A DNA stretch of 58,440 nucleotides, the filler included, from Bipalium vagum (Eukaryota): the NCBI GenBank assembly GCA_037834085.1. It is 3 parts of 3 records of this genome, joined end to end, with 100 filler letters (N's around TTAATTAATTAA, not from the genome) between each part and the next. Parts side by side here need not be neighbours in the genome. Positions count along the whole stretch, not along the records: positions 20,896 to 42,457 come from JBBMKC010235484.1; 2 more parts are not named here. One strand, 5' to 3'. Position numbers and translations under genes: made by a program. How positions within the stretch are numbered: the stretch's first letter is position 1; every line of letters begins with the position of its first letter. Shown piece after piece: positions 22,350-32,620 of the stretch. The notes beneath the pieces are model-generated. The model did not search any database. It was not told where the DNA came from and saw only the letters and a list, made by a program, of their open reading frames with translations.

Positions 22350-23150
22350 AACCTTTTCCAAGCTATATTGTTTTGTTACGCTATTATTTACTATGAACAC
22401 TGTCGTAACACTTAGCTCACAAAGTTTACTGACCCCTTCAATTTTGTCAATATGTGTACGCAAAGTAATGAATAAAGACAACTACGAACAACACTTTATT
22501 GCTAAAATAATAATAAAATGTCTCAAATAATCAATAAAATTTCTGGAATCAAATGTTTAATAACCAATCACAATAAAAATAAAATGGTAATAATCAATTA
22601 AATAATAAAAATCAAATAATTAAATGTTAATTAATTAAAAAAAAACAAAGAAAAGAAAGTGAAGATACTCTCACCAGTTGGGACGACGACAGAGCCCAAT
22701 CCGGTTCGCTCAGAAGCCACTTAACAGCACAGGACCCGTCGTAAGCTCCTGTAGCAGAAAGGGCATGAAGAATGCCTAATTGCAAGAAAAATTCATGGCT
22801 GCTGACGCAGAATGTTGTAGTTCACCGTAATCTTCTGACGCAAAATATCACAATTTTCTCTCAGAGGATTTTATGGTAATCCACTGCGATTCCATCTCCT
22901 TATATACTATTCTGATCAGACGATCAATCAATTGTAGACCAGCTTTATCAATGGGAATGTCAATTCCCTTTTTTCTTGTTAATTCAAAATCGGTCCCTCC
23001 TTGCGGACCCTGATCTAATCTTTGCAATTTAGGTTCGCCATTGTCAAGATTAGATCTGAATAGATAAAATAGTCCAAGATTTAATGAACTAAGTCTGAAA
23101 AAAGAATTTCCCAATTTCAAAAAATCACTCAAACCCCCATAGTGATTGTT
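22350..23150 (+). repeat. Unclassified module, left copy (decayed Cys-rich mini-ORF plus opposite-facing GC-rich hairpin unit); inverted homolog at ~31740-32620
   Basis: Broken ORF YEHCRN..TDPF..MCTQSNE..NYEQHFIAKI aligns to ORF 32365-32610. The segment 22660-22765 aligns in reverse complement to 32125-32242. Confidence 0.8.
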
Positions 23151-24040
23151 ATAGAAGAGTGGCAGCTCGGAGTGTCTATTCCAAAACTGAGATTGAATTC
23201 AAAATGTTAAAAGACAACATTGTAAAAGTTTCCACATTATTCAATTGTGTTGAAAGACTCACACGGATTCACAAAGACCTTAGTCTAAATATTTATTTTG
23301 TTGTAGAGATAAATAATTCACTCTGGTTTATTTTTATTATTACAGATAAGATTTTTATTAATAAATTTTTTATTCATTATTAGGAATTTCGTTTTGAAAT
23401 CAATTTTATGCCTGAGTTGTTTCTATAGTAATCTTTTGAATTTGTCACTTTGAAGTCTTTGAATTACGATTTATACATAAGAATAAAATATTTACTTGGA
23501 ACTGTTCTTTATTTTATTCAAAATTCTTTTTGTAACATTAGCTTTTATAAAATTTTATTGAAACATATAAACAGGACAGCAATATTAAGTAAAACACTAC
23601 TTAATATTATTTTTAGTGACAAGTGCATGCGTTTTTTAAATATTTGTTGTTAAATTTTATTTAATTGATGATTAAAAGCAAAGTACTTTTTAGGATCTCA
23701 TTAAAATAAAATGTGATCTAAAAGCAATATTGTTATCATATTTAAGTTTCGAATCATAATACTGAAATTCATAAATTATCGTTTTAGGTAATTCTAAAAT
23801 ACAAACACTCAAATTAATTATTAATTTTATAATATAAGTGTTATTCAATTTTTAATTTAATTAATAAATTAGTTTTATTTAATTTGTTTTAATACTTAAA
23901 AAATAATATACCAAATTTAAACTTTGTTCAATATAAATTATATTATTATTATTAATAATGAGAACAAGTATAAAAGATTTAAGAAACGGCAATGTATTCA
24001 ATGGTTTTTAACATTAAGAATATATTTATATGAATAGTAA

Positions 24041-24485
24041 CATGTATTTAACGAATCCAATTGTGAAATATTATTTAGTTTAATCTTAATTGCAGTAGTT
24101 TCCTGGTTGTTTGAATCACATGTCATCTCAATATCTTCGAAATCATATATATTTATATAGTATATATCTGTCTATAAATAGGCGACCAATAGGAACGCAC
24201 TTAAACAAAAGAGCCGAATTTTACAATAAGGCATAATTACACAATCGTGCTTATGAAATCTGAAAATAGGTATGATTTTTTTGATTTAATATTTTTATTT
24301 CTAGTTTCCTTTGTATTGAATGTATTTCTTTAATTCTTGTCCAGTTATCTTTGGACTGTTGCCATAAATATCGCTTACATGTATTTAACGAATCCAATTG
24401 TGAAAGCTTATTTAGTTTTTTTCTTAATTGCAATAGTTTCCTGGTTATTTGAGTCGCATGTCATCTCAATATCTTCGAAATCATC
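24041..24485. repeat. ~105-bp direct duplication (24041-24145 and 24378-24484)
   Basis: Both copies read catgtatttaacgaatccaattgtgaaa..ttatttagttt..cttaattgca.tagtttcctggtt.tttga.tc.catgtcatctcaatatcttcgaaatca. Confidence 0.9.
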
Positions 24486-24960
24486 TACATTTGATTTGAT
24501 GTTTGCAACAATTGCGTATTCATTTGCATCAAAATTTATTATAAGCGGGAAGTTTGTTGATTAATTCATGAATCTCATTCAAATTAACCTTCTTATTCCC
24601 AACATCTTTTGAATCCATTACAAAGAGCCTGGAGTGTTTCTGGCCATTGTAAATTGTTGACAAGGTGAATTGTCATCTATATGAAGTTTAACCTTGTTTA
24701 GGATTTTTCAGTCAATTAATTGATCTAACAAATATTTTAAATAAGACATATTCAATCTTGAATGAGTGGATTTTTCCAGCATCTAAAGATTTGAATATTG
24801 ATTCATGTTAAGAAGATGTAGAATACCAATATGTTTTGGACCCAAATTTCGGGATGCATGGCAAGTTGCATTATCAAATATCATTAAACTTTTGTTTTGG
24901 TGATTGCATTAGTGACATGCGTTTGTAAATTACGATAATTTTCACAATAAGCATTGATAC
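24250..24960 (-). mobile_element. pogo/Tigger-type DDE transposase relic
   Basis: Minus-strand KSLMIFDNATCH and SLDAGKIHSFKIEY match the pogo 'LLDNAxxH...QPLDxGIIxSFK..Y' motifs. Confidence 0.7.
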
Positions 24961-25829
24961 AGTTATTTATTTTCATATATTCTTTTAAAAAATTCATTCT
25001 AAAAATATAAAATATTAACTATATTAAAACAATTAATATAAACGTAAAAATAAATTTAAATTAGAAAATTAATATTGACATTTTTTACATATTTATTTAA
25101 GATAAACAAAAACAGACAATCTAAACTTTCATTTAAAACTAAATAAAATCTTATTTAAAGTTAAAATTTTATTTAAAAGTTTAAATTTTCATTTTGAAGT
25201 TCAAACTAATTAATTAATTCAAAAGTTCTTCTGCCCATTTTTTCAGTCTTTATCAAATTTAGTTTATATTTAAATATTCTGCATAAAATTGAAATTTTTG
25301 TTTCTGATCTTTAATTGTAATTATTATTTGAAATATTTATAGGGAATTTAGAAGCTTTATTAGAACATTCCAATCATTCTTTAAACTTTAATTTACAAAA
25401 TTTGATAATAAATTTATCTATTTTTTACCGTGTTCTTTAAATTTTTTAAAAATCATATTAATTTAAACATCCCTCCACAGTTTGTCTTTCTTTTTTATTC
25501 AATTATTCATTTCAAAAGCACTGGTAATGGTAATTCGTATTTTATTTTTTAGAGGTAATGAAAATGCAGGTAGTGGGCATAAATTTATAATGGTTAAAAG
25601 AGTTTTATAATCTCTTTCTCCTGACACAAAAAGTCCGTCCACCAAATATCGTCTTTTGTATCTTATTTCTATAGTTTTTATGTCTCTTGATAATAAATTC
25701 TTTAAATATTTATGTATCAGCTTGATCAATTCTATTTATTGGAATCGAATATGTTTGTAGAAATTGGTTTTAGAATTGAAAGAGAATTCTTCTTCAGTTA
25801 ACTAAAGCGAGTCGTTTTACAGCAAGACT

Positions 25830-30979: not shown

Positions 30980-31372
30980 TTTATGTATATTAGGCGTTGA
31001 TTGTTTTCTTTTAAACATAAGGATATAGGTACTTTGTATTTTTTGGTTGGAACAAGATTCAGAGTCCCAATTTTGATTGAATTGGGGTTTCCTGGGATTT
31101 CTATATTGTTTAAATTAATAATTAAGTCTCATGGCTTGATTATGATTTTTTTTTATTATGCCTGTGATGATAGGTGGTTTTGGAAAATGGTTAATTCATT
31201 TAATGATGTGTATTCCGAAAATGGCTTTTCCTCGGACTAAAAATTTGAGATTTTGACTTTTTAGTATGTTCTTTGTTTTCTATGGGTGGAGTAGGAGCCG
31301 GTTGGACTTTGTATCCACCTTTAACTAGAAAAGTTTTCCAAGGAGGTGTAGGTATGGATTTTGCTATTTTTA
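30980..31372 (+). pseudogene. cox1: NUMT (right arm): cox1 5' ~150 codons, with deletions
   Basis: In mt code [53 protein letters not shown] and GVGAGWTLYPPLTSNVFQGGVGMDFAIF; frameshifted. Confidence 0.95.
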
Positions 31373-31880
31373 ATAATTATTTTCGGATGACTATTAATAT
31401 ATGTAAATTCCCTCTTTTGGACTTCTTTAAAAATAAAAATTACTTTTGGAGGGTTGTTTTTTTTTCCTAAGTATGTTCAAACTAAAAATATCTGTAAATT
31501 TTTAATTTCTCTTCAAGTGCTAATTAATTTTAATGAATGAATATTCTACTTCTTCATTAGAAAATGGTTATATCAGGAAATTTTAATTATCCAGCTCAGT
31601 CCAAACGTATTAGTCTGAACTAAATTAATTATAATCCTTTAAGTGGCTTAGGTAAAAGAATAAAAAATAATGTTTTATTTTAATATAGTAAAGGACTAAT
31701 TAAAAATTTTAGAAATTATGATAAATAATGAATTAGTATTAATTGCACATCCTTGAAAACCCTTGTAAAGTATAGGGTAGAAACCACCATAGGGCTTAAA
31801 TTGATTATTATCAATTAATTATTAAGACCACAAGAGGGTCAGAAATAATAAAAATAATAATAGTGATAGTAATAATAAAA

Positions 31881-32040
31881 AGAAGATAGATCTTAATATT
31901 TTGGTTGTAAGAAGATAGATCGTAATATTTTGGTTGTCAGAAGATAGATCTTAATATTTTTGGTTGTTAGAAGATAGATCTTAATATTTTTGGTTGTCAA
32001 AAGATAGATCTTAATATTTTTGGTTGTCAGAAGAGAGATC
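31881..32040 (+). repeat. Tandem minisatellite, ~5.4 copies of a 29-30 bp unit (agaagatagatcttaatatttttggttgtc)
   Basis: Units start at 31881, 31910, 31939, 31969, 31999 and 32029 (partial); there are no unique spacers. Confidence 0.95.
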
Positions 32041-32099
32041 GAGAAAATTTGATTTTATTTGGTGGAAGACCCAAAATTTGTTGCTATTGTCCGAAAATT

Positions 32100-32620
32100 T
32101 TCAAATTGTAAATTTATATCTATTCCCTCTATGCGACAGGAGCACACGAGGGGTCCTGTGCGGTTAGGAGGTTTCTGAGCGGACCGGATTGGACTCAGCT
32201 AACCACCCTTTGGACCTGTCGTCATAAGCGGTGAGAGTATTTAAATTGTTATTCATTTCTTTTTAATTAACTGAATTGACACTTACTCAATTTGATATTT
32301 AATTATTTAATTGTTAATTATTATTATTCTATATTTTTCAGCGTGCTGGTATTTGATTTTCGTTTTATACACAAACATTTGATTGTAGACATTTTGTTGA
32401 TTTTGAAAGATTTTGTTGTATTGTTATTTTAGCAATAAAGTGTTTTTCATAATTGTTTGATTCATTCAATTGCGTACACGTATAGGAACAAGTGAAGGGA
32501 TCAGTAACGTTACGACAGGGTTCATAGTGAATTAATATCGTAACAGTATTATTATCATTAGTAGAGTAGCAATAACTACCGGAGACCATACCCAACAATA
32601 TTTTTATCAATTTATTTTCT
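32100..32620 (-). repeat. Unclassified module, right copy (includes open Cys-rich mini-ORF 32610-32365)
   Basis: Inverted homolog of 22350-22800. ORF ..SYCYSTNDNNTVTILIHYEPCRNVTDPFTCSYTCTQLNESNNYEKHFIAKITIQQNLSKSTKCLQSNVCV has 6 Cys and a non-ATG start in the track (in-frame ATG at codon 8). Confidence 0.75.

Follow-up and report, generated by a model that had tools for sequence, protein, structure and literature searches.

The window analyzed here is a stretch of 58,440 nucleotides (nt) from the Bipalium vagum assembly GCA_037834085.1, and the work was carried out on the piece that spans its positions 20896-42457 (JBBMKC010235484.1), which has a G+C content of ∼25% and is free of N. Between positions 22350 and 32620 of the window, a first, sequence-only reading had described a ∼10-kb nested inverted structure, and it had proposed an old fold-back duplication or the remains of a large cargo-capturing mobile element. 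With a probability of roughly 55%, we read this structure not as one unit but as the result of unrelated events in a region of a flatworm-like nuclear genome that is rich in transposons. The locus is most likely an ordinary repair scar of nuclear copies of mitochondrial DNA (NUMTs), which lies in transposon debris and has an older, unrelated repeat pair around it.

Two inverted pairs of unequal age

Self-comparison of the piece revealed two inverted pairs and no further repeat of note. The mirror-symmetric module order that had been proposed, reading inward from both sides, was borne out by this comparison, and the inner inverted pair proved to be real, with mitochondrial matches in both arms (Table 1). 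BLAST aligned the inner arms at 27102-27786 and 31050-30367 with 88.5% identity over 706 columns, and after bridging of a 21-nt indel the homology reached ∼27063/31063. The gap-tolerant global alignment contained 33 mismatches in 675 aligned columns (95.1% identity) and 16 indel events of 1-21 nt each. Because only one of these 16 indels was of the homopolymer type, the differences between the inner arms are interpreted as real divergence and not as read noise. The two arms are collinear, of equal age and inverted around a unique spacer of 2580 bp. Fold-back duplication, which the sequence-only reading had considered for the whole 10 kb, is a good fit for this inner pair and not for the entire structure.

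The outer inverted pair is also real. Its homology ends at ∼22775 on the left and ∼32115 on the right and falls short of the claimed limits of 23150 and 31740. BLAST aligned 22374-22766 with 32545-32122 at 69% identity over 443 columns, and the gap-tolerant global alignment gave 64 mismatches in 382 columns (83% identity) with 21 indel events. The Jukes-Cantor distance was 0.190 for the outer pair versus 0.051 for the inner pair, a ∼3.7-fold difference (Fisher p = 6e-10). This larger distance indicates that the outer pair is several times older. Both the greater divergence of the outer arms, which had been estimated by eye, and the separate ages deduced from it were therefore upheld.

Mitochondrial origin of the inner arms

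Pfam scans covered ∼45 open reading frame (ORF) pieces of at least 39 amino acids (aa) between 22044 and 32620. In the region of the left arm, stop-free ORF pieces of the minus strand matched nad4 (Proton_antipo_M, E 2.9e-13) and cytochrome b (cytb, E 7.5e-15). Within the right NUMT, positions 31146-31253 matched aa 67-102 of COX1 in PDB structures (E 2e-9), and this alignment placed two AAA codons at Asn columns and one AGA codon at a Ser column. The echinoderm/flatworm mitochondrial code reads AAA as Asn, AGR as Ser and TGA as Trp. When translation table 9 was applied, the conserved motifs of cox1 and cytb read as in other animals. ARAGORN in mitochondrial mode called a tRNA-Asn (GTT) at 28328-28399 on the minus strand, immediately upstream of cytb.

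The deduced gene order was trnN-cytb ... nad4-spacer-cox1, whose spacer, ∼290 bp long, matches the place where the circular mitochondrial map is joined. The mitogenome of Dugesia has the order ...C-N-cob-nad4l-nad4, followed by cox1 on the circle, and the NUMT gene order is the same (PMC12192195). Both the genetic code and the gene order of the arms fit a triclad flatworm, and the host is accordingly most likely a triclad planarian or one of their close relatives; the use of an invertebrate code shows that the piece is not human. The nad4-cox1 spacer had been described as tRNA-like; the standard search found no tRNA, and the calls made in mitochondrial mode disagreed between the two arms.

Read in the mitochondrial sense, the left NUMT consists of the tRNA-Asn-like sequence, ∼340 bp of the 5' part of cytb, a 3' part of nad4, the spacer and the first ∼25 codons (∼75 bp) of cox1. 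Its cytb is joined straight to the 3' part of nad4, so that two non-adjacent mitochondrial pieces are united, and its cox1 end abuts a hAT-like ORF fragment that is itself cut at that point. The right NUMT holds a 3' part of nad4, which starts ∼100 bp further in than that of the left NUMT, the spacer and ∼390 bp of cox1, and it lacks cytb. Each arm thus carries mitochondrial sequence that is absent from the other. The claim that both arms contain the same modules holds for their order and fails for their content, as the left arm adds further nad4, cytb and the tRNA-Asn-like sequence and the right arm has more of cox1. All four gene fragments are truncated and broken, with a total of at least six frameshifts and at least one premature stop, and the NUMTs are flanked by transposon fragments and a spliced gene. 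Judged by homology, genetic code and gene order, the inner arms are nuclear copies of mitochondrial DNA.

The 17 coding substitutions between the inner arms were spread evenly over codon positions 1, 2 and 3 (5/6/6, chi-square p = 0.95), and the coding parts (95.4%) and the spacer (95.8%) were similar to the same degree. Divergence within the mitochondrial lineage would concentrate at third codon positions. The probability of finding at most 6 of 17 substitutions at third positions is 0.003 if 70% are expected there, 0.035 if 60% are expected and 0.17 if 50% are expected. Each frame break in the shared region was specific to one arm, and none was common to both. Given the even spread over codon positions and the lack of a shared break, the arms would derive from one still-intact mitochondrial sequence and would have diverged after leaving the mitochondrion. 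The inner arms are accordingly best described as two NUMTs of the same age that have decayed neutrally in the nucleus, by ∼2.5% per arm.

The junction inside ORF B and the origin of the inner pair

Between the two NUMTs lie ∼2 kb of nuclear DNA that hold a predicted spliced gene (gene A) and an ORF on the opposite strand (ORF B). The divergent gene pair reported for the center of the structure is present in the form of two divergent ORFs, of which ORF B is broken. An intact relative of ORF B was found in P0001, a 174-aa protein from a 913-bp ENA metagenome contig. ORF B is 92% identical to P0001 over aa 1-95, and the match ends at aa 144 of P0001. ORF B is interrupted by a single frameshift, a 9-bp tandem repeat within it has undergone one in-frame expansion, and its 3' end is missing; no sequence in the piece was found to match the C-terminal 30 aa of P0001.

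The right inner arm begins within the coding sequence of ORF B, exactly where ORF B stops. The final four residues of the match between ORF B and P0001 already lie within the right arm, whose initial 12-14 nt encode them. The same 12-14 nt form continuous nad4 sequence in the left arm, and positions 27775-27786 of the top strand are the reverse complement of these starting nucleotides. This arrangement suggests a junction microhomology of up to ∼12 nt between ORF B and nad4. By our estimate, four residues would match by coincidence at the collinear place with a probability of ∼1e-3.

We consider it somewhat better than an even bet that the inner pair arose in one break-repair episode, by fold-back or template-switch copying. 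A fresh left NUMT would already have been present ∼2.6 kb upstream when ORF B was broken in its 3' part, which left a (resected) 3' end exposed. The ∼12 nt of microhomology would have let this end anneal to the complementary nad4 stretch in the left NUMT. Annealing within the same strand would amount to fold-back priming, and annealing to the sister strand to a template switch. Synthesis from the annealed end would then have copied the left NUMT in inverted orientation to give the right arm, and this copying would have truncated ORF B and left a 2.6-kb spacer containing gene A and ORF B. Finally, a later deletion may have removed the cox1 part of the left copy and part of the hAT-like fragment.

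One such copying step would account at once for the orientation of the arms, for the precise point at which the right arm begins, for the 2580 bp between the arms and for the loss of the end of ORF B. The later loss of cox1 from the left copy is plausible, because the abutting hAT-like fragment breaks off there too and does not continue elsewhere in the piece. As no decay is shared by the two arms, the duplication would have taken place soon after the first insertion.

The outer repeat pair

In both copies of the outer repeat, a 5' block and a linker, both AT-rich, are followed by a GC-rich 3' block. Identities between the copies were 82.7% in the 5' block, 80.4% in the linker and 82.8% in the GC-rich block; since the three blocks are equally diverged, no constraint is visible on any part of the repeat. 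The homology extends over ∼420 bp with sharp ends on both sides, and the copies lie 9.3 kb apart. The 6 bp outside the outer ends differ (TTGTTT versus GTATTA), and there is no target-site duplication. Comparison of 31380-32121 with the left filler (22767-27070) gave AT-rich noise only. Searches of the piece with a profile made from the two copies did not recover a third copy, and the outer module had no match in Rfam at E ≤ 0.1.

The outer modules had been credited with a Cys-rich mini-ORF and a GC-rich hairpin unit, and neither designation could be maintained. The mini-ORF products of the two sides were 34% identical, with gaps and with unaligned cysteines, despite the ∼83% identity of the DNA. 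Folding of the GC-rich block compared with shuffled sequences gave z values of -0.7 to -2.95 in four tests and was no better than the shuffles in three of them. None of the 26 predicted pairs showed a compensatory change, as would be expected of a structured RNA, and the open frames of the block had no Pfam match. Three other assignments were rejected. The core of the GC-rich block was absent from 185,579 prokaryote genomes, which speaks against bacterial DNA; a motif likeness to an exon of a PIF/Harbinger-type transposase received no Pfam support, and the two copies would splice in different phases; and the outer module is not the end of the neighboring mariner, as no mariner lies beside the right copy.

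Its short unit, sharp ends, neutral decay and lack of flanking homology point to an interspersed repeat. We therefore slightly favor seeing the outer arms as a pair of far older copies of one unclassified interspersed repeat of ∼420 bp, unrelated to the NUMTs. Two copies of a repeat have even odds of standing in inverted orientation.

The central genes

ORF B encodes a small protein with a predicted helix-turn-helix (HTH) and a single C2H2 finger. An exhaustive search with P0001 returned 122 representatives of its family (P0001-P0122) at E ≤ 0.001, of which 22 had E ≤ 1e-10. Nearly all of them are 80-220 aa long and have the N-terminal ∼90 residues in common, many carry a single C2H2 finger, the tail is acidic, and almost all are singletons. 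Two positions of the family alignment, M1 and D62, do not vary, and three more, P38, R58 and S67, are conserved in at least 90% of the sequences. The family members originate from ENA, JGI and Logan contigs, mostly of 0.7-5 kb. One repetitive hypothetical protein of Toxocara canis was also present among the entries of the cluster look-up.

Searches of Pfam and PHROGs with the family gave sub-threshold HTH and zinc-finger matches only, and no Pfam family covers it. The AlphaFold model of P0001 (predicted local distance difference test score 81) retrieved nothing at E ≤ 0.001 from PDB or BFVD; it showed a weak, non-significant likeness to small regulators of giant-virus satellites (E ≥ 0.03). 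Neither P0001 nor alignment A4 retrieved a relative of ORF B in metagenome scans, and a scan of prokaryote genomes with the family member P0013 was likewise empty. ORF B is best described as a broken member of an uncharacterized family of small, predicted DNA-binding proteins, and it is not a working regulator here.

Gene A was modeled with three exons (29270-29439, 29130-29222 and 28878-29091) in consistent phases, separated by GT-AG introns of 47 and 38 nt. When its exons were searched separately, Laminin_II appeared in Pfam at sub-threshold level only, and a word search with exon 3, which has a length window, found no homologue. The first intron contains a perfect 28-nt AT palindrome at 29238-29265.

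Alternative explanations

A possible, if rather doubtful, origin of the inner pair is that two overlapping mitochondrial DNA fragments were ligated into two nearby breaks that flank the segment with gene A and ORF B, either during a single repair event or during two separated by little time. The inverted orientation would then be due to chance, and no copying from arm to arm would have occurred. Capture of mitochondrial DNA at breaks, with the use of microhomology, is reported as the origin of NUMTs (PMC2567098). Such a double capture gives each arm its own mitochondrial ends (nad4/cytb on the left, cox1 on the right) without an extra step. It also agrees with the joining of two non-adjacent pieces in the left NUMT, which is typical of ligated fragments, and with the lack of a break common to both arms, and the neutral divergence fits it equally. 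However, the same 0.7-kb mitochondrial region would have to be captured twice within 2.6 kb, a microhomology of ∼12 nt is long for classical end joining, and deletions must have occurred in any case, since ORF B lacks its end and the hAT-like fragment its continuation. Fold-back or template-switch copying, combined with an older dispersed repeat, has several points against it as well. Copying needs an additional step, in which the left NUMT would once have held the ∼330 bp of cox1 that are now present in the right copy only. The microhomology is read from four aa of a 92%-identical relative, at the level of the protein, and the codon-position test draws on 17 differences and yields P = 0.17 at an expectation of 50%. 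Duplication soon after insertion fits double capture equally well, and the dispersal of the outer repeat is deduced from its short, sharp-ended form within the piece.

The other explanations concern the whole structure. One old fold-back of the entire ∼10 kb, followed by transposon insertions and deletions on the left and by gene conversion that kept the inner arms similar, appears quite improbable. The collinear, mirror-symmetric order of the modules would be expected from it, and the left filler does hold transposon debris. It is contradicted by the 3.7-fold greater distance of the outer arms and by the lack of homology between outer and inner arms, where DNA of 83% identity would still be detectable. 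The sharp bounds of the outer homology and the mitochondrial sequence unique to each NUMT arm also disagree with it, and the many private indels in the arms are contrary to ongoing conversion. It is scarcely credible that the inverted layout is an assembly artefact produced by a mis-join or by a chimeric fold-back read. Inverted chimeras are known from amplification and from long-read libraries, yet an artefact would yield near-identical arms, whereas the arms found here differ by the 33 substitutions and 16 indels described above and each includes mitochondrial sequence of its own. Equally remote is a large mobile element with the outer modules as terminal inverted repeats, captured mitochondrial DNA as cargo and ORF B as its regulator. 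It could account for an inverted pair of ∼420 bp at a distance of 9.3 kb, for a predicted DNA-binding protein whose uncharacterized family occurs mostly on short metagenome contigs, and for the non-significant fold likeness of this family to regulators of giant-virus satellites. Against it, the Pfam scans of the ∼45 ORF pieces detected no polymerase, integrase, capsid, packaging ATPase, protease or Rep/helicase, in line with the earlier statement that integrase and capsid genes were missing. The same scans detected neither the protein-primed B-family DNA polymerase and retroviral-type integrase nor the capsid, packaging ATPase and maturation protease of Maverick/Polinton elements. In place of terminal inverted repeats with a target-site duplication of 5-6 bp, there is an inverted pair of 83% identity with different flanking 6-mers. 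Helitrons have no terminal inverted repeats; they have 5'-TC ... CTRR-3' ends with a 3' hairpin. The inverted arms present here and the absence of a Rep/helicase from the Pfam results do not match a Helitron, for which the 5'-TC...CTRR-3' ends were not searched. Furthermore, the interior is made up of NUMTs, remnants of other transposons and a spliced gene for a coiled-coil protein, and the supposed regulator of the element is a truncated, frameshifted copy that is cut by the NUMT junction itself. The Maverick/Polinton-like and Helitron-like interpretations are not supported, and the composite of a NUMT repair scar and an older repeat pair is preferred.

Other features of the locus

The coordinates of the features are listed in Table 1. 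The family names given to features of the left filler, pogo-like and hAT-like, are our assignment from motif likeness and had no matches in Pfam. The PHPPYS... motif at 22044-22345 resembles that of the mariner piece at 42100-42456, and it was not confirmed by Pfam. The 30-bp tandem array is confined to the right side, where it lies immediately internal to the outer repeat; nothing equivalent occurs on the left.

Table 1. Coordinates of the features of the locus, given as positions in the window
Feature	Position	Strand	Content or basis
Degenerate mariner transposase C-terminal fragment	22044..22345	+	Abuts left outer repeat; PHPPYS... motif in translation
Left outer repeat copy, ∼400 bp	22374..22775	+	Homologous only to 32115-32545, inverted
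Left filler	22776..27062	.	Transposon debris and unassigned sequence; translations
Direct duplication	24040-24154 and 24377-24492		Left filler; 338-bp period, 90% identity
Pogo-like DDE remnant	∼24560-24900	-	Translation motif likeness
hAT-like ORF fragment	26832-27062	+	Cut off at NUMT; translation motif likeness
Left inner arm	27063..27786	-	Part of left NUMT common to right NUMT
Left NUMT	27063..28400	-	Pfam, table-9 translation, ARAGORN; strand skew ends ∼28340-28400
Left cytb breaks			1 frameshift
Left nad4 breaks			At least 2 frameshifts and at least 1 premature stop
Gene A	28878..29439	-	Predicted spliced coiled-coil gene, 158 codons; splice model by eye
ORF B	29902..30380	+	Broken small HTH and single C2H2 protein; match to P0001
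Right inner arm	30367..31063	+	Self-comparison, gap-tolerant alignment
Right NUMT	30367..31400	+	Table-9 translation, COX1 match; strand skew ends ∼31380-31410
Right nad4 breaks			1 frameshift
Right cox1 breaks			2 frameshifts and in-frame deletions
30-bp tandem array	31881..32040	+	5.4 copies, 93% matches; just inside right outer repeat
Right outer repeat copy, ∼430 bp	32115..32545	-	Homologous only to 22374-22775, inverted

Beside the left outer repeat, an open frame of 116 codons with normal composition was observed at 22851-23198 on the minus strand. It had no Pfam match and no homologue in a word search, which has a length window, and it could have arisen by chance or represent an exon of an unknown gene. 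To the right of the structure, a thioredoxin-domain exon was found at 34933-35094 on the plus strand (Pfam E 6.6e-16); it probably belongs to a spliced host gene extending as far as ∼35570. Mariner-type fragments occur on the plus strand at 36255-37057 (DUF4817 HTH, E 4.5e-4) and 37480-37860 (Mos1-type HTH_48, E 4.9e-10), and a mariner-type transposase C-terminus at 42100-42456 on the minus strand runs off the edge of the piece. Two AT-rich stretches, 34040-34103 and 41872-41960, are 76-78% identical to their own reverse complement and resemble each other; they are probably low-complexity sequence.

Implications and comparison with known systems

The locus illustrates that a NUMT repair scar and two old repeat copies can mimic a mirror-symmetric element of 10 kb. 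For the barcoding of planarians, nuclear cox1 copies like these could be mistaken for mitochondrial haplotypes. Of minor value, the locus offers an example of the arrival or duplication of a NUMT truncating a neighboring gene at a probable microhomology junction. We regard as speculative and unlikely a more far-reaching interpretation, in which the inner pair would be a cleanly preserved germline fossil of a nuclear gene end that was primed by fold-back on a newly arrived NUMT in a planarian-like genome. Separately, and just as speculatively, ORF B could come from an undescribed family of small HTH-C2H2 genes carried by an unknown selfish element. If such a fossil were real, fresh NUMTs could seed inverted duplications that disrupt neighboring genes, and if such an element existed, it would explain the occurrence of ORF B relatives on short metagenome contigs.

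The likeness of the structure to Maverick/Polinton elements is limited to its order of size (10 kb versus 15-20 kb) and to a terminal inverted pair of a few hundred bp. It differs from them in the lack of the defining genes and of a target-site duplication, and its interior is otherwise explained. The outer module shares with short interspersed repeats and fragments of miniature inverted-repeat transposable elements its length of ∼420 bp, its non-coding character, its sharp ends and its old, neutrally decayed copies. Unlike them, the module lacks both terminal inverted repeats and a target-site duplication of its own, and no tRNA, 5S or 7SL-like head was detected in it.

Fold-back inverted duplications with kilobase spacers and microhomology junctions are reported for human (PMC3907307), and fold-back or template-switch inverted duplications with a unique spacer are reported for yeast (PMC10766183, PMC11724301). 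The inner pair resembles such duplications in its inverted arms and its kilobase spacer, and one arm probably starts at a short complementarity to the other. It differs in that its arms measure only ∼0.7 kb and in that the event is old (∼5% divergence).

The closest correspondence is with NUMTs, with which the inner arms share mitochondrial homology, collinearity with the mitogenome of the lineage, pseudogenization, the joining of non-adjacent pieces and a probable microhomology junction in nuclear sequence. The difference is that two overlapping copies of the same region are present here, inverted around 2 kb of nuclear DNA. This inverted double-NUMT layout is less common, yet no new mechanism is needed to account for it.

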